Shown here one piece after another: positions 8,880 to 55,709 of a stretch of 64,000 bases of DNA; position 1 is the first letter of the stretch, and every line of letters begins with the position of its first letter. A program made the position numbers and the translations under genes. The notes below the pieces were generated by a model. It worked only from the letters and a program-made list of their open reading frames with translations. It was not told the origin of the DNA and ran no database searches. Location of the stretch: NCBI GenBank assembly GCA_030704615.1, contig CM060732.1, positions 4,960,001 through 5,024,000 on the forward strand. Reading direction: 5' to 3'. Source of the stretch: Takakia lepidozioides. Its lineage: Eukaryota; Plantae; Bryophyta.

Positions 8880-9190
8880 GAGGACAATGTGGTGAGGGCA
8901 CCTTCTTTTTCAACCTATTTCAGCCTGTTTTTCCCTCTCATCAGACTCGGCCCTGAGATGCATATTGAATTCTGTAAGTAATCTCGTTTTGCTTCTAAAA
9001 GAATTTCAAGGGAGGGAGTCCATTATGCCTCTTCTGGCTCTTCTGGGCATGTGAAGATGCTTTGTGAGGCAGGCAGACTAAAAGATGCTCTACAGACTTT
9101 AAACCAAGGAGCATTTCAGCAGATTCAAATTTGTATGTATGTCTCTTGCTTAAGTGCATCAAGATGAAAGGTCTGGAAGCGGGAAAGCAG
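8880..9190 (+). pseudogene. 5' exon/linker fragment of the PDF-PPR gene family, truncated at 9190
   Basis: Near-identical to 33590-33765 (SSGHVKMLCEAGRLKDALQTLNQG...YVCLLLKCIKMKGLEAGKQ), and includes the recurring exon ending gaattct|gtaagt. Confidence 0.7.
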
Positions 9191-28667: not shown

Positions 28668-29812
28668 GTCTGTAGTTTACCTTCAAAAGCTCTCTTTCGT
28701 ATTTTCTCCCTCTTGGCCTCACAAGTTTTTTTCTCCCTCTTGGGTTCATGGTCAGTCAAATCCTCCATGGGTCATGACACAAGGTCAAGGACAATGTGGT
28801 GAGGGCATCCACTTCTTCGACCTATTTCAGCCTGTTTTACCCTTTCATCAGACTCGGCCTTGAATTTGCATATTGAATTCTGTAAGTTGTTAGCTCGCTG
28901 GGTGGATCTGTGGTGGTTGGAGCAGGCCGTGTTTCAATCTCAGCCCGCTCAGCTGCACCGTGGTGGTTCTCACATACCAATCCGACATTACCTGACTACA
29001 AACACAAGCAGCACACACAAGAGGTCCTCTTGGGTTCTTGGTCAGTCAAATCCTCCATGGGTCATGACACAAGGTCAATGACAATGTGGTGAGGGCACCT
29101 TCTTCTTCGACCTATTTCAGCCTGTTTGCCCTCTCATTAGACTCGGCCTGAATTTGCATATTGAATTCTGTAAGTTAGCTCGTTGGGTGGATCTATGCTG
29201 GTTTGGAGTGACTTTGACAAGTTGCTGCCGATGTGGCAGCTCAGGAAAGTACCCAAAAACAAATAAGAGAGATGAAGAAAAGCTTTGGAATGAACACTTT
29301 TCCGGCTCCTTCTGGGCTTGACACAGAGTTCTATGGAAAAATGTGCATGATACCTGTTCATTAATTGAATAGTTGGTTACTTCAAAAGCATAGCAATGAA
29401 TCTAATAATTTGTTTGGCACAACATGTAGGGTGACTCCTTGGGTCATGCCGTGGTGGAGTATGAAGCAGCCGCTCGCATTTTCAGGTGTGAACATTCTAG
29501 CACTCTTTTGGTATGTCGGTTATGTTTATCTATGGGTATGTATGGCAGTACAGCAATGCCTGACCCCATGAAGGCTTGTGACACTGCCCGCTAGTATCAT
29601 TAAGGAGAGTACTGTTGTGCCCCCGTCTAAAAAGCCTAGTTTCATAGGGTTGCTTATACATAGTATTTCTTCTTTACAGCTACACAGGTTGTGACAACCA
29701 GGGATGGTAACCACCTCCCTTGGGCCCTTTATCCTAAATTTTCTGCAAGTTAGCTGGTTGAGTGAATCATGTTTGGAGTGACTTTGACATGATACTGCCA
29801 ATGTAACAACAG

Positions 29813-30240
29813 GAAAGTATCCAAAAACACGTGACAAAGATGAGGAGAAGCTGTGGAATGAGTATCTGACCCCAGTCAATGGTGGGACAACCGAGGCAAA
29901 AAGGTGAATGCCTATTAGATTACAGAGAGTAGCAGACGCAATTCAGCATAGGAACTGTGGATAAGCTGAGTTGGATGTTTCCTAGAACAAATCTAGGCTG
30001 TCATCATCAACTGCAAGGCAAGGATGTATGTATGCAGGTTTGTGCAGAGGTGCCAGTGATAGCTGAAGGAGCAGGGATAGAGTGTGGGTCCAGATTTATC
30101 CAAGAGGGCCAGATTTCAAGCACAAGTTTACCTATGATTCCCTGTGGATCAATAGCTACAAGAAACCTGCATGGGTAGACGGTCAACTAAAGGCAATTGC
30201 TGCAGCGGCACAGTTGATAAAATCAGGCACCTCAACCATG
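29813..30240 (+). pseudogene. two exons encoding an OSB-type PDF ssDNA-binding motif (N-terminus of the PPR gene family)
   Basis: EKLWNEY..DPSQWWDNRGKK | GT-AG intron 29904-30093 | IYPRGPDFKHKFTYDSLWINSYKKPAWVDGQL. Confidence 0.75.
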
Positions 30241-31095
30241 ATCACACATGTGGCACAGATCTCATGTAGTACTTACAGTTGCGCACTCCTATTCACTTGT
30301 TGTTGATCTGCTTATACATATGTGCATTCATGTGCAGGACATGCGATCTTGATATCTTGTAAGGAGGACGCAGAAGGTCTTGGGGCTGAAGGAGGCATGC
30401 TATGGACAATCAGGGAGGAGGAAGGTGTTCGGTCTGTCACATGTTTGGATCCATATATGTGCAGTGGGTAGTTGGGTAGTTGGGCTACCGTTGAGAGATT
30501 AGATTCTTGAAAACACTTCACTTTTTTGTTGATCTGGAGGCACTGCACAGATTTGAAACATGGAACCATTGTCTTCCTATCATATTTTACATCAATCGTT
30601 GAATTTCTTTTTAATCAATTGGCTCGTGACATCGTGTATTTGTGCAAAATAATATATTCTCCATATTATAAGTTACATATAAACGGTATTATATTTGAAT
30701 ACATATAAACATAATAAATTCAGTAAACATACAACACAAATTAAACCAATGTCCCCTGTTCTTTGAAAAATAAAATAAAAATAAAAATAAAAATAAAACA
30801 AATGCATCCATCCACTTGTCGCGTGGCATGCATGCGAGATAGGGTCGTCCCTACACATGTCATCATCTGAAATTGACACGTAGCAATCCGGGGAGAGTCG
30901 TGTGTTGCTAGAAAACAGTCACTGACGTGACCAAAAATAGGGTCATGTATCTTGCTCACTGGGGATGTCACCCAGAGTCATATTCACGACACGGATATTA
31001 GAGTCATCGTAACGACACGGTCTGCATGACTCTTTGCAAAAGAGTAAAAAATGAATCAAAATGATCAAAAGAGTCATGAAAACAGTAAAAAAAAG

Positions 31096-32345
31096 TGTCT
31101 AAGCCCAACCACATCACGTTTGTGTGCATTTGCAAATTCATATGCAAGCCTGGCAGCTCTGGAAAAGGGCAAAGAGGTGCATGGTTGCATCACCAAAGAA
31201 TTGTACCAGATGTGATTATGAACAATACCCTCGTGGACATATATGCCAAATGTGGGAGCATTGAGGATGCGGTGGGAGTGTTCAAAAATATGGCTGAACG
31301 AGATTTGGTGTCATGGAACGCGATGCTTGCAGGATCTGCACAGCAGGGCGCAGGACGGAGGCCTTGGAAACCTATGAGCAAATGATGGGGGAAGGGGTGA
31401 AGTGCCACCGCATCACGTTTGTGTGCGTTTGTAATGCTTGTGCAAGCCTGGTAGCCCTGGAAAATGGCAAAGAGGTCCATGGTGACAATCATCAAAGCTG
31501 GAATTGTACCACATGTCATTATGGACACTGCCCTGATGGACATGTATGCGAAATGTGGGTGCATTGAGGATACAAAGGGAGTATTTGACAATATGGCTGA
31601 ACGAAATGTGGTGTCATGGAATGCGATGATTGCAGGATATGCTCAGCATGGTTGTCATACGGAGGTCCTGCAACTATTTGAAGGAATGGAAAAGAACAGC
31701 TTGAAGCCGGACAGTATCACCTCTATATGTGTTCTCTCTGCATGCAACCACATTGGCCTACTCAATGAAGGAAGACGCTACTTCGATTCCCTGAGTCAAG
31801 ATCATGGTGTCACTCCGACAGTAAAGCACTTTGGCTGCATGGTGGACCTTCTTGGACGTGCGGGACAACTGGATGAGGCAGTGGACCTGATTAATAAAAT
31901 GCCAATCAATCCAGATGTTGTGGTGTGGAAGGCCTTGCTTGGTGCCTACAGAATCCATGGCAATGTGGAGATGGCTGAATGTGCGGCAACATCTATCCTC
32001 AAGTGGGATGAACACGATGCAATATGTATTGCTATCAAACATCTATGTTGCAGCTGGCAGGTGGGATGATACTACAAAGGTGATAAGAATGATGAAGGTC
32101 AGAGGGGTTAGAAAGGAGCCACGTCGCTGCTGCATTGAGGTTGGCAACAGGATGCACACGTTTGTCGTAGATGACAAGTTGCATCCCAGAATTAAGGAAA
32201 TCCATGCTGAACTGAGAAGATTGTCTGGGCAGATGAAAGAGGCAGGGTATGTTCCTGACACGCGCTTTGTATTGCATGATGTGGGGGAGGAGGAAAATGA
32301 ATTTTCTCTTTGCCACCACAGTGAGAAGCTGGCCATTGGTTTTCA
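31096..32345 (+). pseudogene. PLS-PPR + E/E+ + partial DYW deaminase (RNA-editing factor) pseudogene
   Basis: P/L/S motifs, HFGCMVDLLGRAGQLDEA, YVLLSNIY..AGRW, PG-box-like KEPRRCCIEV, GYVPDT, HHSEKLAIGF, then truncated. Confidence 0.92.
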
Positions 32346-32816
32346 CAGACCAATCCAGGATCACCAGACTATAGACATAAGCAGCACACGCATGAGGTCC
32401 TTTGGATTGAGAGTTGGTTGAATCCTCCTTGGGTGGAAGAAAAGCTAGCTGCTTTCATGAGACAAGATCAAGGACAACTGGTGCGGGCACTTTCTTCTTC
32501 AACCATTTAGTCTTGTTTTGTCCTCTTATCACATTCATTCCCAATTTTTCACTTTGTGTTTTTAAGTTACCTCGTTGGGTGAATCTATGGTGGTTTGGAT
32601 TTTTTGCACATGTTACTGCCAATGGGATAATAGACGCATTGAAAAAACTTTCTCACAAATTGTCAGCAATGCAGCACCAAAACTAGTGTGTGGTAAGTAT
32701 GGTCAGGGTGTTTGCTAGATAAATTTTAGGTTATCATTGTCAGCTCTTAGCAGCAGGGCCATACTGTTGCCTAGGCAGGGTTAGCTGAAAGAGGCAGGGA
32801 TGAAGTGTGGGTGCAG

Positions 32817-34795
32817 ATCCATCCGAGAGGTCCTGATTTCAAGCACCAGAGTGCATATGACCACTGAGGATTGACAGCTACAAAAAACCTGCAAGGGTAG
32901 ATGGTCATCTTGAAGAGGCAATGGCAGCACAATTGATAAAATCAGGCACCTCCACAATGATCTCCACTTCCAAAAGAGGACCCTGGGAAGAAGTTCTCAA
33001 GATTTCTTCTGGCGCTTCTGAACTTGTGAGGACACTGTATGAGGCACACTGAAAGAGGCTCTAAATTTTTGAACCATGGAGGCATTTTCACAGAGTCAGA
33101 TAATGAAGGCACCTTCATCAACACATTTCATCCTGTTTTTCCCTATTATCAGAATTGGCCCTAAATTATCGTGTTGAATTCTGCAAGTTAGCTGGTTGAG
33201 TGAACTTTGATAGTTTGAAGTGACTGACATGATACTGCCAATGTGACAACAGAAAAGTATCCAGAAATAGGTAACAGAGACGTGGAGAAGTTGTGGAATG
33301 AAAACTTTCCTGACCCCAGTTAATGGTGGGACAATCGAGGCAAAAAGGTGAATGTCTGTTGGATTACAGAGAGTAGCAGATGCAATTGAGCATATGAACT
33401 AGTGTGATAAGTTGAGTTGGGTGTTTCCTAGAACTTCAAGCTCCAGATTACTTATGATTCCCTGTGGATCAATAGCTACAAGAAACCTGCATGGGTAGAT
33501 GGTCACCTAAAGGCAGCAGCTGCAACGGCACCTTTGCTAAAATCAGGCACCTCAACCTTGACCACAACTTCTGAAAGAGGATCAAGAGAGGGAGTCCACA
33601 ATCCCTCTTCTGGCACTTTTGGGCATGTGAAGATGTTTTGTGCGGCAGGCAGTCTGACAGAGGCTCTACAGAATTTAAACCAAGGAGGCATTTCAGAACG
33701 TATGTCTGTCTCTTGTTTAAGTGCATCGAGATGGAAGGTCTGGAAGCTGGAAAGCAGATGCACACTCACATTATCCAAAGTGGGATTCCCGCCAAATGTT
33801 TTTCTACTCAACACCCTTGTCAACATGTATGTTAAGTGCAGGAGCATCATGGATGCTCACCAAGTGTTAACAGAAGGGCTCAACCATCTTTGATCACGTG
33901 GAACACGATGCTTGCAGGGTATGTACAACAAGGGCGTGGTATGGAGGCCTTGGAGACCTATGATCAAATGATGGGGGAAGGGGTGAAGCCCGACCACATC
34001 ACGTTTCTGTGCATTTGCAATGCGTGTGCAAGCCTGGCAGCTCTGGAAAATGGTGAAGATGTGCATGGCGATCAAATCTGGAATTATACCAGATGTCATT
34101 TTGAACACTACCCTGGTGGAAATGTTTGTCAAATGTGCGTGCATCGAGGATCCAAAGGGAGTGCTCGACAGTATTGGCTGAACGAGATGTGGTGTCGTGG
34201 AGTGCGATGATTGCAGGATATGCACAACAAGGGTGTTTGATGGAGGCTTTGGGGACCTATGAGCAAATGATGTGCGAAGGGGTGAAGCCCAACCACATCA
34301 CATTTTTTTTGTTTGCAATGCGTGTGCAAGCCTGGGAGCTCTGGAAAAGGGGAAAGAGGTCCATGGTGACATTGTCAAAGCTGGAATTGTACCAGATGTC
34401 ATCCTGAACCCTGCCCTGGTGGACATGGATGCAAAATGTGGGTGCATTAAGGATGCAAAGGGGTGAAGCCCAACCACATCACATTTGTTTTTGTTTGCAA
34501 TGCGTGTGCAAGCCTGGGAGCTTTGGAAAAGGGGGAAGAGGTCCATGGTGTGAAGACAATGTCTGCCACCACATTTTCGTGCGCGGGATTGGAGTTACCA
34601 CCTGCCTGGGCGCTTGTTGCTCAAAGCTGGAATTGTACCAGATGTCATCCTGAACACTGCCCTGGTGGACATGGATGCAAAATGTGGGTGCATTAAGGAT
34701 GTGAAGGGAGTTTTCAACACTATGGCTGACCGAGATGTGGTGTTGTGGAACGCGATGCTTGCAGGGTATGCACAGCAGGGGCGCGGGATGGAGGT
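32817..34795 (+). pseudogene. PDF-motif + PLS-PPR pseudogene pieces
   Basis: PDF second half at 32817-32910; WWDNRGKK exon at 33255-33347; FKLQITYDSLWINSYKKPAWVDGHL continues in frame through a linker, then (two frameshifts) into PPR motifs (33435-33870); further PLS repeats with local duplications. Confidence 0.8.
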
Positions 34796-35379
34796 CTGCT
34801 TCTGTAAGGTACTTCTTTGTGATGCAGTGCAAAGCTTGTAGATAGATGAAGGACACTTGGTCAAAGGCACAATGCAGACAACCTCTTGTGGCAATTCGTA
34901 TAGCCTAGCGCAAATCTGTGAGAGCTCCAAAAGTAGGTTGCATTCTTTCTGGCTGTTGTTCCTGAAGTACTGTCACTCGTGTTTTAGGTTGAGGCTGTAA
35001 GGCTGCACCATACTGAGGCTGCCAAAACTCTGTTGCTACTTCCGTGTGTGCGGGATGAAGGTGTACATGACCAATAGGACTGCAGGTGTTTGTCTTTGTA
35101 TTATTTTTCAAATGAGTGATGGTGGGGTGTTGTGCAGTGTGTTTACTCCTCTTCTCATATGAGCTTCACCGTCGGCTGCACTCAAGTGACGACTCTTCTC
35201 ACATCTCAGTCGTGCACGGTCTTCTCCTCAGACCCACTCCTCAACTTTATCTGCTTCCCTACAAATTGAGTGCTTAATGTTGCATTTTTGTCAACAGTGC
35301 TGCAGATCCAGGGGCAGTGAATACTGACATTTTGCGGGAAGTACCTGTTTGGCTTGCAAAGCTGAGCAATGTGCTTCTC

Positions 35380-38300
35380 ATGAGGTGTGACACCCAACAT
35401 TATTACATTCATTTCTGTTCTCAATGCTTGTGCCAGCCTAGTAGCCCTGGAAAAAGGTACAGAGGTCCATGAGCTGACATAATTCTGGAGACTACCCTTG
35501 TCGATATGTATGCCAAGTATGGGAGCTTGAACGATGCCAGACAAGTTTTTGACAAAATGTCTCAACGAAATGTGTTCTCATGGAGTGCGATGATGGAGGA
35601 TTTTGAGATGTATGAGCAGATGATACGGGAAGGCATAACGCCCAACAAGGTCACGTTCATTTCCATTCTCAATGCATGTGCCAGCATAACAGCCCTGGAG
35701 AAGGTCCATGCTGACATCATAAAAAATGGAGTTGTCTCATATATCTCTTTAGAAAATGCACTTTTTAACAGGTATGCCAAATGCGGCAGCTTAAAGGATG
35801 CACGGGAAGTGTTCCACAACATGGTTGAGCAAGATGTGGTATCATGGAGCGCAATCCCAGTGCAATGTCGATTGCAGGATATGCTCAGCATGGGTTTGAT
35901 AAGGAGGCTTTAGATATCTATGAGCAAATGATACAGGAAGGGATGACACCCAACAAGGTTATGTTCATTTGTGTTCTCAAGGCCTGTGTCATTCTCTTCG
36001 ACCAGTAGATGCCAATTAGACGCTGCTCCATGATAATGCTGCGGGGTTTGAGGCCGCTGTGTCAAGCAGTCAACTGCTTGTAGGATAAGCAAGTTGATTC
36101 TTGTCATATGATCATGTCGGGGCTCTCTCTAGCAGCATTGTCGACTGAGCTTATGCCTAAGTCACCTGCATGATTCCACAATGGTGCTAGCCACATAGAA
36201 TCTTGCAGGCAGAATTAGGGTAAGTGACGGTGGTCCATGGGTTTGCCCACAACTCGCACTAACTGTTGAGGGCAGATGTGGGCCCCTGCATTGAACAATG
36301 CCTTGGAGAATCGCCTGTCAACTGGCCTTTCAGCCTTTTGTCGGTGAGGGGTTGATGTAGTTGACCTACTTTAGGGTTTTGGAGTTGTTCAATCTATTTT
36401 TTTTCTCTCCTGCAGTCATGTGAGAAATGTTAGTGCCTCCTAAGTGTATACAAGGTGTCCAGACTTGAGTCTAATTAGTTTCCAATGCTAATTTGCTGCA
36501 GACAGGGTCATTATGCAGTCACCTGTGGTTCAAGATTAGTATTTAGTCTCCAGGCAGCTCTGCCTTGCAACGATGCCTTCCACCAGCATTTCCCTTCTTT
36601 GTGTAGATCATTGGTCGGGCCCCTACTCGCAACATCACTCCAATCAGCAGCATAGCTCTTCAGTTACAGGTCAAACGCAGAGTGCTTTGTGGAGTAGGAG
36701 GGTTCAATCATGCAGCAAGCAAGTTTATAGCAGTTTTTCAAGTAGAGTGTCTCTGTCATTGGCCAGGCTCCATGGTCGAAACCAATTGAAAATTTAAAAA
36801 TATCATATAAAGAACATTCATAATACAAATCTGTCAATTGTATCAAAACCTCCCGTTCATTTGTATTCTCATGCATGTGCCAGCCAAGTAGCCCTGGAAA
36901 AGGGCCAAGAGGTCGATGCTGACATCACCCAAGCTGGGATTGCCCGAGGTATCATTCCGGAGACTACTCTAGTTGACATGTATGCCAAATGTGGGAGTAT
37001 GAAGGATGCATTCTCAGCGTTTGACAGAATGGCTAAACAAGATGTGGTAGCCTCCGCAACAATCCACCATTTTTTTGAAAAACAAAGAAACACATGATGT
37101 ATGTATGTAACACTCTGGGGATGACCCACCCCTTTATGCTTCCAAACTCTGGGGATGCCGAAGAGGAGGGACCAGCAGGATTTTGGCCCTCTTTCCTTTG
37201 AAAAATAAAAATAATATGATAGCTTCGGCAACACTCCGCCGTTCTTCTTCCGGAAAACAATGAAATATGGGATGTATGTATGTAACACCATGGAGATGAC
37301 CCACCCTTTTTGTGAAAAATTGAACGTAGTTCTCAGAATTTGTCGCTTGTAGTGCGGAGCAACGCGAAGCCCTAGTTCTAGCGACGACCGAAGGTCGGAA
37401 GCTAATTTAGCGTAGAGCAGGAATAGGGTGCCATAGTGCCACGTCATCATCACCACGTCATCATAGCCAGGTCATCGTAGACACGTCATCATCGTCGTCA
37501 ATTTCTTTGGAATCTGCCCGGACTGCCCGCCCAAAATATGCCAATAGAAATCGTTGCGCCAACTTTTTCGGAACTGCCCGCAATGCCCGGATCTTGATCT
37601 TCTTGAACTGCAGGAGCTCTTCGTTTTCTGCCATCGTTCACCTTGGTAGCTGCAAGCTCTCAACAAATTGAGGAAATCCATGCTGAGGTAGATTGTCTTG
37701 GCAGATGAAGGATCAAGCATAGAAATGTCTTAATGTGGCTTTCGACATTGGGTGAGCCAGTGAGGGTTGTAAAGTTCAAGAATTTGAGTGATACGAAACC
37801 TGAAAACAACTGGATGGTGAACGCTATAAAGAAGTGTAGTGGAGGGGATCTGTCATGGAGAAGGTATTTACTGAATTTGAGGTCTTGTGGATAGAACTCA
37901 CATTGAAGTGAGAAAAGAAAAGTTGAAATTTGAACAGAACTGTTTGACTCTGATTGCAATGGCCTTCATTTCAGAGTTGGTTTGAAGTCAAGTTTGACAT
38001 AGGCTGCAGGGGTGCGGGATGGAGGCTTTGGAGACCTATGAGCAAATGATGGGGGAAGGGGTGAAACCCGACCACGTCACATTTGTATGTGTTTGGAGTG
38101 TGTGTGCTGGAAAAGGGCAAAGAGGTGCATGGTTGCATCGCCAAGCTGGAATTGTACATACTGAACCATACCCTCGTGCACATGTATGCCAAATTTGGGA
38201 GCATTGAGGATGCGGAGGGAGTGTTCAACAATATGCCTGAACGACGTTGTGCCGTGACAGGTGGTGTGCTTGAAGCAGAAGCAGCGACACAATTGATAAA

Positions 38301-40880
38301 ATCAGGCATCGCTAATCAAGGCACCTTCTTCAATACATTTCACCCAGTTTTAAATATCTGTGCGTTCGATACCACCTGAAACCGGGGTCGGTTTTTTTGG
38401 AGGAGGAAAGGAAGGACTCAAACGGCCTTGTTGTCGAGAGTATTGTTGTGCTCCACGATGATTTTGGCGATGGCAGGGAATGGCGAGTTCCACCATCGGA
38501 CAACGTCATATACAGGGCTGTTGGGGACTTCATTTGCACGCCAAATGCACCTTCTATCCTAGCGCCTTCCACGAAACAATCCGCGAATCAGAGAGTGGCT
38601 ACCTCAAAGAGAGAAGTCAGCAACGAAGTAAATCCAAAGCCGAACCCATCCATGAAGACGACAACAGGAAAGTAGCCAAAAACAGGTAACAGAGATGAGG
38701 AGAAGTTGTGGAATGAATACTTTTCTGAGCCCATTTACTGGTGACAGCCCTGGAAAAGGGCAAAGATGTGCATGGTTGCATCACCGAAGCTGGAATTGTA
38801 CCAGATGTGATTCTGAACAATACTCGTGGACATGTATGCCAAATGTGGGAGCATTGAGGATGCGGAGGGAGTGTTCAACACTATGGTTGAATGAGATGCG
38901 GTGTCGTGGAATGCGATGCTTGCAGGCTGTGCACAACAGGAGCGGGGGATGGAGGCTTTGGAGACCTATGAGCAAATGACGGGGGAAGGGGTGAAGCCTG
39001 ATCACATAACGTTTGTGTGCTTGTGCAAGCCTGGCAGCCTTGGAAAAGGGCAAAGAGGTCCATGGTTGCATCGTCAAAGCTGGAAATGTACCAAATGTGA
39101 ACTATACCCTTGTGGACATGTATGCCAAATGTGGAGGGAGTGTTCAACAATATGGCTGAATCTGCCTGTTTTGCCCTCTCAACAGACTTGGCCCTGAGAT
39201 GCATATTGAATTCTGTATGTTAGCTCGTTGGGTGTATCTGTGGTGGTTAGGAGTGACTTTGACAAGTTACTGCCGATGTGGCAGCAGGAAAGTATCCAAA
39301 AACAGATAACATAGATGAGGAGAAGGCTTGTTGGTGGATCTATGGTGGTTTTGGAGTGATTTTGACAAGTTACAGTAGGTAGGGTTGGGGTGTTTGTTGG
39401 AAGAACTTTGCGCCGTCAGTGTCAGCTGCTAGCAGCAAGGCTGAGGATGTATTCACGATATGTACACAGGCATGGATAGCTGAAGGAGCAGGGATCGAGT
39501 GTGGGTCCAGATTCATCCAAAAGGGCCGGATTTCAAGCTCCAGATTACCTATGATTCCCTGTGGAAGGATAGCTACAAGAAACAGATGGTCAACTGGAAG
39601 CCGCAGCAGCAGCGGCACAATGGAGAAAATCAGGCACTGCTAATGAAGACACCTTCTTCAACACATTTCACCCTATTTTTCCCTCTTATCAGAATCGGCC
39701 CTAAATTTCCATGTTGAATTCTGCAAGTTAGTTGGTTGAGTGAATCTTGTTTGGAGTGACTTTGACATGATACTGCCAATGTGACAACAGGAAAGTATCC
39801 AAAAACAGGTAACATAGATGAGAAAAAACTGTGGAATGAATACTTTTCTGACACCAGTCAATGGTGGGATAACCGAGGCAAAAAGGTGAATGCCTGTCAG
39901 ATTACCAGATGTGATTTTGAACACTGCCCTGGTGGACATGTATGCCAAAGTATCGAGGATGGCAAGGGAGCGTTCAACACTATGGCTAAACGAGATGTGG
40001 TGTTGTGGAGCGCGGTGCTTGCAGGGTATGCACAGCAGGGACGAGAGATGGAGGTGGGATGGAGGCTTTGGAGACCTATGCGCAATCGATGGGGGAAGGG
40101 GTGAAGCCTGATCACATCACGTTTGTGTGCGTTTGCAGTGCGTGTGCAAGCCTGGCACCCTGGAAAAGGGCAAGAGGTGCATGGTTGCATCACCAAATCT
40201 GCGAAGGGAGGGTTCGACACTATGGCCGAATGTGATGTGGTGTCGTGGAACACGATGCTTGCAGGGTATGCACAGCAGGGGCCTGGGAGGAGGCTTTGGA
40301 TACCTATGAGCAAATGATATTACATGTATGCAATTAGGGAGTATGAAGGATGCACATCAAGTGTTTAATAAAATGGGTCAACGGGATGTGGTCTCATGGA
40401 ACACCATGATTGCAGGATATGCCCAGAATGGGTGTGGTAGGCAGGCTTTGGAGATCTATGAGAAGATGCAACAGGAAGGGGTGACACCCAATAGGGCCAC
40501 GTTCCTTTGTGTTCCGAACGCCTGTGCAAGCCTAGGAGCCTTGAAAAAGGGCAAAGAGGTCCTTGCTAACATTCTCAAACCTGGAATCGCGTCATATATT
40601 AACTTGGAAACTGCCCTTGCTGACATGTACGCCAAATGCAAGAGCATGAAGGACAGACGACAAGTATTTAAGAGTATGGCTGTACGAGATGTGGTCTCAT
40701 GGAGTGCCATGATCATTGGGTACGCTCAAGAGGGTGTAGTAGTTGGGAGGCATTGAGGTTTATAAGAAAATGCAACAGGAAGGGTGTGACACGCAACAGG
40801 GTCACCTTCATCTGCATTCTCAAGGCTTGTGCCAGCCTAGGAGCCCTGGAAATGGGCAAAGAAGTCCACAGTGACATCAT
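35380..40880 (+). pseudogene. mosaic of PLS-PPR and PDF-exon fragments; the last PPR copy (40328-40880) is split by the retrotransposon
   Basis: repeated DVVSW/LVDMYAKCG/GVKPDHITF motifs; PDF exons at 38665-38725, 39500-39590 and 39790-39885; the reading EVHSDII|KAEIV resumes at 53528. Confidence 0.85.
37061..37376 (+). repeat. dispersed repeat ending in CTAG|T (Helitron-like 3' end), also at 56304-56448
   Basis: shared gatgacccaccc...gtgaaaaattgaac.tagttctcagaatt.gtcgct.gtagtgc.gagcaacgcgaagccctagt; similarity stops right after CTAGT in both copies. Confidence 0.45.
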
Positions 40881-53527: not shown

Positions 53528-54634
53528 GACATCATCAAAGCTGAGATTGTGTCAGATATAACTTTGGAGAATACACTTGTCGACATGTATGCCAAATGTG
53601 GGAACATGAAGGATGTGCATCAAGTGTTTGACAAGATGACTAAACGAGACATGGTCTCATGGAGTGCCATGATCGCAAGATACATACAGGATGGGTCTAG
53701 TAGGGAGGCTTTCAAGATCTATGAGCAGATGGAACTTGAAGGGGTGATGCCCAACCATGTCACATTTATTTGCATTCTCAATGCGTGTGCCAGCCTTGGA
53801 GCCTTGGGAAAGGGTAAAGAAGTCCATGCTGACATCTTGAAAGCTGAAATTACGTCATATGTAAATCTGGAGACTGCACTTGTAGACATGTAAGCCAAAT
53901 GTGGGAGCTTAGAGGATGCGCGTGAAGTGTTTGACAGTATGGCTAAACAAGATGTGGTCTCATGGAATGCGCTGATCATAGGATATGCTCAGCACGGGTG
54001 TGGTAGGGAGGCCTTGCTCCTATTGGAACAAATGCAACAGGAAGGCGTGAAGCCTAATAGTAGTACCTTCATATCTGTCTTTTCAGCAAGCAGCCATGGG
54101 GGTCTAGTGGATGAAAGCCATCAGTGCTTTGATTCCTTGAGACATGATCATGGTCTCACTGCTACAGTGGAGCATTTTAGCTGCATGGTGGACCTTCTTG
54201 GCCGTGCAGGGCGATTGTATAAAGCAGAGGACTTAATTAACACGTGCCAATCATGCCAGATGTTGGGGTATGGATGGCCTTGCTTGGTGCCTGCAGAGTT
54301 TGGAGATGTGGAGATAGCAGAACGTGTAGCAAAGAGCATTCTCAAGATTGATCTGGAGCACTCCGCGGCTTATGCGCTGCTATCAAACATTTATGTTGCG
54401 GCTGGCAGGTGGGATGACAAAGCAAAGGTGAGAAAAATGATGAAGGACAAGGGTATCAGAAAGGAGCCAGGGTGCAGCTGCATTGAGGTTGACAACAGGG
54501 TGCATACTTTTGTTGTAGGAGACAAATTGCATCCACAAATTCAGGAAATTCATGCTGAGCTGCAGAGATTGTCTGGACTGATGAAGGGGGTGGGATATAT
54601 TCCTGACACGCGCTTTGTGTTACATGACGTTTAG
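53528..54634 (+). pseudogene. 3' part of the PLS-PPR-E/E+ gene split by the retroelement; truncated in the DYW domain
   Basis: DIIKAEIVSDITLENTLVDMYAKCG..., HFSCMVDLLGRAGRL, YALLSNIY, KEPGCSCIEV, GYIPDTRFVLHDV*; in-frame TAA at 53891. Confidence 0.9.
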
Positions 54635-54644
54635 GAGGACATGA

Positions 54645-55709
54645 TGTCAAATGTGGGTGCATCGAGGATGCAAATGGAGTGTTTGACAGTATGGCTGAAC
54701 GTGATGTGGTGTCGTGGAGTGTGATGATTGCAAGATATACACAACAAGGGTGCAGGATGGAGGCTTTGGAGACCTATGAGCAAATGATGTGCGAAGGGGT
54801 GAAAACCAACCACATCACGTTTGTGTCAATGCTTGTGCAAGCCTGGTAGCCCTGGAAAATGGCAAAGGATGCATGGTGACATCATCAAAGCTGGAATTGT
54901 ACCAAATGTCATTCTGAACACTGCCCTGGTGGACATGTATGCGAAATGTGGGTGCATTGAGGATGCACAGGGAGTATTTGACAATGTGGTTGGCTTGAAG
55001 CCGGACAGTATCACCTTTATATATTTTTTCTCTGCATGCAGCCACACTGGCCTACTGAATGAAGGAAGATGCTACTTCGATTCCCTGAGTCAAGATCATG
55101 GTGCACCCCGCCAGTAAAGCACTTTGGCTATGGTGGACCTTCTGGACGTGCGGGACAACTACATGAGGCAGTGGACCTGATTAATAAAATGCCAATCAAT
55201 CCAGATGTTGTGGTGTGGAAGGCCTTGCTTGGTGCCTGCAGAATCCATGGCAATGTGGAGATGGCTGAATGTGTGGTAACATCTATCCTCAAGTGGGATG
55301 AACAGGATGCCACGACTTATGTGTTGCTATATCAAACATCTATACTGCAGCTGGCAAGTGGGATGATACTGCAAAGGTGAGAAGAATGATGAAGGTCAGA
55401 GGGGTTAGAAAGGAGCCAGATGACAAGTTGCATCCCAGAATTAAGGAAATCCATGCTGAGCTGAGAAGAGGAGGCGGGGTATGTGCCTGACACACGCTTT
55501 TTATTGCATGATGTGGAGGAAGCTGAGAAGCTGGCCATTGGTTTTGGGCTGATCAGCACGACTCATCAAGAATCTTCGAGTGTGTGGAGACTGCCACACC
55601 TCCACCAAATTCATCTCAAAGATTGTTGGCCGAGCAATTGTTGTATGGGACGCTAACTACTTTCCACCACTTTGAAGATGGGATTTGTTCTTGTGGTGCT
55701 TACTGGTGA
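54645..55709 (+). pseudogene. PLS-PPR-E-DYW pseudogene with DYW C-terminus (ends CSCGAYW*)
   Basis: [49 protein letters not shown]; HSE zinc motif deleted; very similar to 31450-32345. Confidence 0.9.

Follow-up and report, generated by a model that had tools for sequence, protein, structure and literature searches.

The window, a 64,000-nucleotide stretch of Takakia lepidozioides DNA (GenBank GCA_030704615.1, contig CM060732.1, positions 4,960,001 to 5,024,000), contains relic PDF exons at 28.6-40.9 kb that alternate, on the + strand, with broken PLS-PPR, E, and DYW pieces. A six-frame motif scan and tblastn searches with the window's own pieces recovered at least six exon-1-type pieces, encoding the first half of the PDF motif through WWDNRGKK (at 29238, 29803, 33243, 38688, 39278, and 39781), four exon-2-type pieces (PDFKHK...LW...P.WV; at 30082, 32805, 33432, and 39499), and linker/PPR lead pieces at 32933, 33534, and 8991, all on the + strand and with tblastn E-values between copies of 1e-4 to 1e-37. 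The initial annotation had described recurrent PDF half-exons and a linker near 9010, both of which these searches recover; two relics of a diverged PDF second half (PDF-A; 28967-29063 and 32340-32470) were absent from it. The features, in order of position, are:

8991..9104, + strand: lone linker/PPR-lead relic (tblastn E 5e-13)
28967..29063, + strand: relic of the PDF-A second half (PDYKHK...NPPWV), frameshifted (tblastn with the N-terminus of Diphasiastrum P0141; OSB-PDF profile E 7e-4 on the piece 28886-29089)
29238..29309, + strand: exon-1 relic that ends after its LWNE part (tblastn E 2e-7 against the intact copy at 39781)
29803..29903, + strand: exon 1 with one frameshift and a GT donor at 29904 (motif scan, tblastn; OSB-PDF profile E 1e-5 on 29862-29915)
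29904..30093, + strand: intron dividing the PDF motif, GT...AG, 190 nt (sequence reading; position as in the Diphasiastrum, Sphagnum, and Calypogeia genes)
30094..30255, + strand: uninterrupted exon 2 encoding the PDF second half and an Ala/Ser/Thr linker (ORF 30082-30306; protein search E 1e-23; OSB-PDF profile E 6e-12)
31100..32343, + strand: PPR repeats, E1, E2, and a partial DYW that ends at HSEKLAIGF, with frameshifts (Pfam PPR 8e-24; E motif 4e-9 and E+ 7e-6 on 31915-32421; DYW_deaminase 8e-8)
32340..32470, + strand: PDF-A second half, uninterrupted (64% identity with the second PDF of Diphasiastrum P0141; OSB-PDF profile E 5e-10; PPR-linked profile E 8e-15)
32620..32646, + strand: exon-1 relic with an internal deletion leaving the WDNR part (ORF 32575-32718 compared with the 29.8 kb copy)
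32805..33046, + strand: exon 2 interrupted by one stop and one frameshift, followed by linker and PPR lead (tblastn E 5e-15, 2e-5)
33243..33347, + strand: exon 1 with an in-frame stop just ahead of WWDNR (motif scan; tblastn E 1e-12)
33432..33870, + strand: exon 2 lacking its first ~10 codons, continuing through the linker to the first PPR motif, with two frameshifts (ORFs 33534-33893 and 33638-33835; Pfam PPR_1 9e-5; tblastn)
33870..36030, + strand: broken run of PLS-type PPR repeats (repeat families D1-D10; Pfam on ORF 35506-35913)
38254..38325, + strand: linker relic fused to sequence usually found upstream of exon 1 (tblastn; repeat D19)
38688..38741, + strand: exon-1 relic joined mid-exon to a PPR fragment (motif scan, tblastn)
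39278..39325, + strand: exon-1 relic of the 16 initial codons only (tblastn E 1e-4)
39499..39640, + strand: exon 2 with a frameshift past its SYKK part (motif scan, tblastn; OSB-PDF profile E 8e-5)
39781..39885, + strand: exon 1, uninterrupted, with a GT donor, then ~13 nt of intron and a PPR fragment (motif scan, tblastn; OSB-PDF profile E 2e-8)
39900..40880, + strand: broken PPR repeats, longest frame 142 aa (ORF 40328-40756, Pfam PPR_2 7e-19), bounded at ~40880 by what we take to be a Ty3-type retrotransposon
53951..55706, + strand: PPR-E-DYW relics past the retrotransposon (tblastn with the E-DYW part of P0141, E 1e-40, 8e-20)

The joints between these pieces vary from copy to copy. Homology in the exon 2 at 30094..30255 stops at ~30250, followed by unrelated AT-rich DNA; no convincing terminal repeats, which would be a sign of a transposon, flank this AT-rich stretch (30250-31100), and Rfam gave no match within 27-42 kb. 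The PPR-E-DYW piece at 31100..32343 is 59% identical to Diphasiastrum P0141, and its DYW portion covers Pfam profile positions 1-34 of 93, the zinc-binding CxxC part being missing. The PDF-A half at 32340..32470, whose closest similarity (64%) is to Diphasiastrum, abuts this truncated DYW directly, at what looks like its former splice acceptor. This joint at 32.34 kb occurs in a single copy, since alignment A2 shows other sequence upstream in the 28.9 kb copy; an origin of the joint before the local duplications was rejected on these grounds. Past the retrotransposon, one relic within 53951..55706 extends to a C-terminal CSCGAYW and is broken by stops and deletions; at 55.2-55.7 kb, both CxxC and the C-terminal end of DYW are still present in a broken relic. 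The PDF profile found no match near the linker relic at 8991..9104. At 33432-33870, exon 2 reads on into the first PPR motif with two small frameshifts on the way, in agreement with the original description.

Searches for the PDF motif were run exon by exon, with exons 1 and 2 kept as separate queries rather than spliced into one. A profile built from 139 non-PPR PDF motifs matched ten pieces, all on the + strand and all inside 28.6-40.1 kb, with E-values of 6e-12 for exon 2, 5e-10 for the PDF-A half, and 2e-8 for exon 1. Exon 1 corresponds to profile positions 7-32 and exon 2 to positions 30-61, and together they therefore make up one complete PDF motif. An exhaustive search of 1.8 billion proteins with the exon-2 ORF matched PDF-bearing proteins at E 1e-23, and because of this score and the ten pieces matched by the 139-motif profile, the recurrence of PDF pieces is, by sequence comparison, far above chance. 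BLASTP against a Sinapis OSB-type protein with three PDFs gave 48-55% identity. The signature residues (W12, W22, D24, R26, K29, PDF, LW, P54, and W56) are 94-100% retained in PPR-linked copies and are equally conserved in the non-PPR context. Judged by these matches, the window motif is a true OSB-type PDF motif (~50 aa, WWDNR...K...PDFKHK...LW...P.WV), as the initial annotation had proposed.

The partner domains are likewise recognizable, since local ORFs carry tandem PLS-type PPR motifs (Pfam PPR 8e-24, PPR_2 8e-23) together with E1/E2 motifs. A complete DYW deaminase (HxE, CxxC, and C-terminal DYW) was not found locally and is found in Diphasiastrum relatives. No PDF exon in the window is connected to an intact PPR-DYW frame, and the PPR-E-DYW part has no uninterrupted coding frame locally; the three longest PPR reading frames measure 201, 142, and 135 aa. 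Stops or frameshifts are seen in every copy. With the longest PPR frame at 201 aa and all copies damaged, every PDF-PPR copy in the window is therefore a damaged pseudogene fragment and no working gene is encoded, contrary to the earlier suggestion that the window encodes such factors. Three uninterrupted pieces (exon 1 at 39781-39885, exon 2 at 30094-30255, and the PDF-A half at 32340-32470) could be taken as a sign that some local copy still works, its defects being skipped by splicing, but we regard this as highly improbable: no intact PPR array follows any of the three, the undamaged exon 1 is joined to a PPR fragment by way of 13 nt of intron, the 32.3 kb DYW piece lacks its zinc-binding part, and PPR-DYW factors require a contiguous frame of at least 600 aa. 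The regions at 28.6-40.9 kb and, beyond the retrotransposon, at 53.9-55.7 kb form a mosaic of dead paralogues from a single gene family, whose pieces were joined at arbitrary points by duplications and illegitimate deletions.

Intact members of this family are found in other plants. Full-length proteins with one to three PDF modules followed by PPR, E, and DYW domains occur in Diphasiastrum, Sphagnum, Calypogeia, Adiantum, and Ceratopteris, where they are annotated as "hypothetical"; the Sphagnum and Calypogeia proteins have one canonical PDF each. A Trinity transcript of Pteridium encodes three PDFs, PPR, and E within one reading frame, and Logan contig L001 contains a single 1371-aa frame. 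Diphasiastrum complanatum has ~100 annotated PDF-PPR genes, about one-third of them with a full DYW domain (as in P0124, P0141, P0174, and P0194), and in intact relatives the DYW cytidine deaminase ends in CSCGDYW. The proposal of an expanded family thus holds for Diphasiastrum complanatum but not for the window, where all copies are pseudogene fragments. From these gene and transcript sequences, the PDF-PPR-E-DYW architecture is genuine, with intact members in a liverwort, mosses, a clubmoss, and ferns. A full-text literature search found no publication linking PDF or OSB with PPR or DYW, in line with the initial annotation, which knew of no description of such an architecture. The parent family is a lineage of PLS-PPR-E-DYW proteins, putative organelle RNA-editing factors; its small 5' exons specify an N-terminus resembling a presequence, followed by between one and three PDF modules of the OSB type.

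Each PDF module is split by an intron after the conserved lysine that follows WWDNR, and this intron lies at the same codon in a liverwort (Calypogeia), a moss (Sphagnum), a clubmoss (Diphasiastrum), and the window; it is missing from both OSB-type genes examined (Sinapis and Sanguina). On a motif tree, the PPR-linked label requires 3 changes versus 32 in shuffles, and a tree constrained to a single PPR-linked clade is not rejected (p-AU 0.90), although this tree is based on 66 columns and is poorly resolved, with many of the PPR-linked rows being Diphasiastrum paralogues. In the unconstrained tree, the fern motifs fall outside the main PPR-linked clade. The count of changes and the constrained tree speak for a single lineage of PPR-linked PDF motifs.

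These observations also bear on whether the PDF exons could come from a distinct OSB gene brought next to PPR pseudogenes by rearrangement, making the fusion illusory. The locus is strongly rearranged, and its PDF pieces adjoin one another as in multi-PDF OSB proteins, but this reading is already contradicted at the sequence level and retains next to no likelihood: the window has no OB-fold or SSB-like sequence; five other genera have annotated, intact genes with the PDF-linker-PPR order, and the fern transcript has this order too; exon 1 of the window has the FSDPSQWWD signature typical of PPR-linked motifs, and both it and the PDF-A half score higher with the PPR-linked profile than with the non-PPR profile; and the motif-splitting intron is shared with PPR-linked genes, whereas neither of the two OSB-type genes examined has it. 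The PDF half-exons are accordingly best assigned to PLS-PPR-E-DYW genes, as first annotated.

An AF2 model of the PDF module, calculated for a family representative (Calypogeia P0224:47-112, 148 aligned motifs) rather than for the broken local copies, has a pLDDT of 89.8 and shows a compact helix-strand-strand-helix unit directly before the first PPR helix. Compared with the ESM Atlas, the model matches PPR/DYW clusters with TM 0.91-0.94 and a plant SSB-family (PF00436) cluster with TM 0.86 and an rmsd of 1.1 Å; PDB fold searches gave no credible match (Foldseek best E 6.7; VIA-align best Z 3.9). As modeled, the PPR-linked PDF shares its fold with the OSB/SSB-family PDF.

Taken together, we consider it probable that the locus is explained by dead local paralogues of a real PDF-PPR-E-DYW lineage whose PDF module would bind single-stranded nucleic acid. 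In such a factor, the PPR tract would recognize RNA lying upstream of the target C, the base that the C-terminal DYW deaminase would edit; by analogy with OSB proteins, the N-terminal PDF module, at the 5' end of the bound RNA, would add sequence-independent single-stranded nucleic-acid binding. The PDF of AtOSB1/2 binds ssDNA in preference to dsDNA or RNA (PMC6963530, PMC4166229). Our preferred reading, which we hold tentatively and at somewhat less than an even chance, is that the PDF would anchor the factor to single-stranded stretches of the organellar nucleoid, near nascent transcripts. The initially proposed tethering to nucleoid ssDNA or R-loops, or placement of a deaminase near ssDNA, would be an extrapolation only from the published Arabidopsis OSB1/2 PDF. 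Because moss PPR56 still edits in Escherichia coli without the N-terminus upstream of its PPRs (PMC10482289), the editing core can dispense with such an N-terminal module.

Nearly as likely, and still short of an even chance, is direct contact of the PDF module with the target RNA at a site 5' of the PPR footprint; it would then act as a built-in helper that raises affinity in plants without MORF-type helpers rather than as a DNA binder. PPR proteins bind with their N-terminus facing the 5' side of the RNA, an established polarity that would put the module on this side; in the bryophyte proteins it lies only ~15 residues ahead of the first PPR, and many aromatic-stacking ssDNA binders also bind ssRNA. 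Against this, OSB1 and OSB2 favor ssDNA over RNA according to reviews (PMC4166229). Less plausibly, the module could have lost nucleic-acid contact and become a protein-protein or structural element that serves in oligomerization, capping of the PPR solenoid, or import and suborganellar sorting. The tetrameric state of AtOSB2 (PMC6963530) and the predicted compact unit directly ahead of the first PPR helix would fit this role, but with the OSB signature residues 94-100% kept in PPR-linked copies, the same ligand is the simplest explanation. A broad extension of the preferred nucleoid reading, to which we give slightly less credence again, is that a large share of the DYW factors of seed-free land plants would be physically coupled to organellar DNA via the PDF, with editing taking place co-transcriptionally on a displaced strand or R-loop; in its extreme version, the DYW domain would reach single-stranded organellar DNA.

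Plant organelle editing relies on a PPR tract and a DYW deaminase, to which flowering plants add separate helper proteins. If our explanation is true, the editing factors of liverworts, mosses, clubmosses, and ferns would contain a conserved built-in module for single-stranded nucleic acid; this module would count as a new accessory component of the editosome, would link editing to the nucleoid, and could matter for the design of synthetic PPR editors. The window itself is of smaller value, documenting the decay of such genes in tandem arrays. Small upstream exons are easily dropped from PPR gene models, neither Pfam nor NCBIfam has a model covering the PDF part, and domain-based surveys are blind to PDF because Pfam lacks such a model. 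A recent catalogue of PPR fusions lists MORF, RRM, and RanBP2-Znf fusions and leaves OSB and PDF unmentioned (PMC13386178).

Compared with OSB proteins, the PDF-PPR family has the same ~50-aa motif with the same nearly invariant residues and the same predicted fold (TM 0.86). It differs in lacking an OB-fold/SSB-like domain (PPR, E, and DYW domains were found in intact relatives, PF00436 was not), in placing the PDF N-terminal to a PPR array rather than C-terminal to an OB fold, in having an RNA-editing deaminase as the partner domain, and in the intron within the PDF, which the two OSB-type genes lack. With PLS-class PPR-E-DYW factors such as Physcomitrium PPR56 and PPR65 and the Arabidopsis DYW proteins, the intact relatives have PLS-type PPRs, E1/E2, and DYW in common, and the local relics have the same parts; in the PDF-PPR family, however, one to three PDF modules precede the PPR tract, and the 5' end comprises several exons, in contrast to the typical intronless PPR gene. 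Like PPR-RRM/ORRM, PPR-SMR, and PRORP proteins, the family combines a sequence-specific PPR tract with a second nucleic-acid-handling module.

The initial annotation read 29813-33870 as encoding PLS-PPR-DYW RNA-editing factors with, at the N terminus, the PDF motif of plant organellar single-stranded DNA (ssDNA)-binding (OSB) proteins. The recurring PDF pieces it described were recovered both by a six-frame motif scan and by tblastn with the window's own pieces. Its reading of the locus as encoding editing factors is, however, not supported, as no intact gene is present: every local copy is damaged, and the longest PPR frames in the window are 201, 142, and 135 aa. All PDF and linker pieces found in the window lie on the + strand.

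Relics of PDF-PPR-E-DYW sequence in the window
29238, 29803, 33243, 38688, 39278, and 39781, + strand: exon 1, first half of the PDF motif (LWNEYFSD.SQWWDNRGKK); motif scan, tblastn
30082, 32805, 33432, and 39499, + strand: exon 2, second half (PDFKHK...LW...P.WV) with an Ala/Ser/Thr linker; motif scan, tblastn
32933, 33534, and, alone, 8991, + strand: linker and PPR lead; motif scan, tblastn
29904-30093, + strand: 190-nt intron (GT...AG) between exons 1 and 2 of the best-preserved pair; read from the sequence
32340-32470 and 28967-29063, + strand: second half (PDYRHK...NPPWV) of PDF-A, a second, diverged motif type; tblastn
53951-55706 (53.95-55.7 kb), + strand: further PPR-E-DYW relics; tblastn

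Only three pieces are uninterrupted, namely an exon 1 (39781-39885), an exon 2 (30094-30255), and a PDF-A half (32340-32470), and none of them is followed by an intact PPR array. This exon 1 runs via 13 nt of intron into a PPR fragment, and the PDF-A half directly abuts an E-DYW piece (31915-32343) that ends after HSEKLAIGF, at position 34 of 93 in the DYW profile. The fusion point of the exon-1 relic at 38688 lies mid-exon, and junctions differ from copy to copy (alignment A2); identity among the local copies is 87-91%. With its damaged copies, broken frames, and differing junctions, the region is a decayed, rearranged array rather than a gene.

Beyond the intact exon 2, the expected linker and PPR lead are replaced by unrelated AT-rich DNA (30250-31100) that includes an (AAAATA)n run near 30770-30800; a search for terminal repeats around this stretch found no convincing ones. 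Two E-DYW relics lie within 53951-55706, one of which retains CGDCH and a C-terminal CSCGAYW, yet its frame is broken by stops and deletions. The window holds no OB-fold sequence, and an Rfam search of 27-42 kb gave no match.

Pfam has no model covering the PDF motif, and homology searches were run exon by exon, with exons 1 and 2 as separate queries. Consistent with the OSB assignment, an OSB-type profile made solely from 139 motifs of non-PPR proteins matched ten window pieces, all of them + strand and confined to 28.6-40.1 kb (E values of 6e-12 for exon 2, 5e-10 for the PDF-A half, and 2e-8 for exon 1). Exon 1 aligns to positions 7-32 of this profile and exon 2 to positions 30-61, and the two thus add up to exactly one motif. 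An exhaustive search of 1.8 billion representatives with the exon-2 ORF alone returned 108 proteins (best E 1e-23), most with tandem PDF copies and OSB-like lengths. These matches include Kingdonia uniflora P0001 (1160 aa; 12 PDF stretches and a weak SSB hit), Coptis P0051 (a kinesin motor with two PDF motifs), and Striga P0046 (SSB with three PDFs, though named a ROP interactor); all three are probably merged gene models, but they could be real fusions.

The PDF-PPR-E-DYW architecture is real in other plants. Two of the 108 matches are long PPR proteins with N-terminal PDF motifs, and intact PDF-PPR proteins occur in a liverwort, Sphagnum, Diphasiastrum, and ferns. The proposal of an expanded family is borne out in Diphasiastrum complanatum, where the N-terminal region of KAJ7568880.1 retrieved ~100 annotated PPR proteins, all termed "hypothetical", about a third with PF14432 (DYW). 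In four proteins of this species (P0124, P0141, P0174, and P0194), two or three PDF motifs accompany PLS repeats, the E and E+ motifs, and a complete DYW domain with CSCGDYW at its end. The Sphagnum proteins and P0224 of Calypogeia fissa have a presequence-like N terminus and then one canonical PDF ~15 residues before the first PPR. Among ferns, it is seen in Adiantum and Ceratopteris, in a Trinity transcript of Pteridium aquilinum (1374 aa), and in a Logan contig of 4755 nt that contains one frame of 1371 aa, and an ESM Atlas shape search found the module in three PPR/DYW clusters (57-127 members).

Neighboring locus tags are common among the Diphasiastrum genes (e.g., 16G079600-079900, 05G046600-047200, 13G104100-104300, and 15G072100/072200), indicating that the family tends to form tandem clusters. 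Such clusters could be the setting in which arrays like that in the window form.

As the initial annotation held, the architecture appears undescribed: a full-text search of literature outside subscription papers found none tying PDF or OSB to PPR or DYW. A 2026 catalog of domain fusions in editing factors (PMC13386178) does not mention OSB or PDF, nor does a 2026 OSB family paper mention PPR.

AlphaFold2 on 148 aligned motifs confidently predicts a small fold made up of a helix, two short strands, and a helix (pLDDT 89.8). In the ESM Atlas, this model fits PPR/DYW clusters at TM 0.91-0.94 and one plant SSB-family cluster at TM 0.86 (rmsd 1.1 Å); PDB fold searches with it gave no credible match. 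Two clusters of tailed-phage (Uroviricota) hypothetical proteins (54 and 122 members, 187-199 aa) also resemble the fold, with TM 0.63-0.69 over 57-64 residues, which may hint at its origin, although a fold this small could also match by chance. PPR-linked copies retain the signature residues at 94-100%, just like other PDF motifs, leaving aside the PDFKHK columns, which served to select the motifs.

The PPR tract binds RNA with its N terminus toward the 5' side, and DYW edits the C just 3' of the footprint; the PDF module thus occupies the 5' end of the complex. There, it would provide an anchor to single-stranded nucleic acid that does not depend on sequence. The PDF motif of AtOSB1/2 binds ssDNA in preference to dsDNA or RNA (PMC6963530, PMC4166229), and by analogy, the module may tether the editing factor to nucleoid ssDNA, a reading that we favor tentatively. 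The anchored strand might instead be RNA, the less preferred ligand of AtOSB1/2, and a role as an RNA clamp is nearly as likely. A protein-protein or structural role is less likely for a motif that keeps the signature of other PDFs. Because moss PPR56 without its N terminus still edits in Escherichia coli (PMC10482289), the module is probably accessory and not catalytic.

Several observations bear on the history of the PPR-linked modules. Window exon 1 and the PDF-A half score higher with a PPR-linked profile than with the OSB-type profile, and the PDF-A half shares 64% identity with the second PDF of P0141. In a 148-motif tree, the label for PPR linkage takes 3 changes versus 32 in shuffles, and a tree constrained to one clade is not rejected, scoring above the rapid unconstrained tree (p-AU 0.90). 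Resting on 66 columns with many Diphasiastrum paralogues, this result is suggestive of one lineage rather than repeated accidents.

When proteins were mapped onto their own genomic loci, the PDF was found split directly 3' of the conserved lysine after WWD.R in both motifs of Diphasiastrum, in Sphagnum magellanicum, and in C. fissa, the same position as the window intron (29904-30093). In the latter two species, the second PDF half and the entire PPR-E-DYW form one exon, and the window copy at 33432-33870 likewise runs from the second PDF half into PPR. The Diphasiastrum gene O6H91_01G051500 has an additional intron, missing from the bryophyte genes and from that window copy, that separates its PPR exon from the last of the PDF exons; its degenerate first PDF carries a long insertion. 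In two genes compared, an OSB-type one from Sinapis and an OSB-like one from the green alga Sanguina, all PDF motifs lie in one exon.
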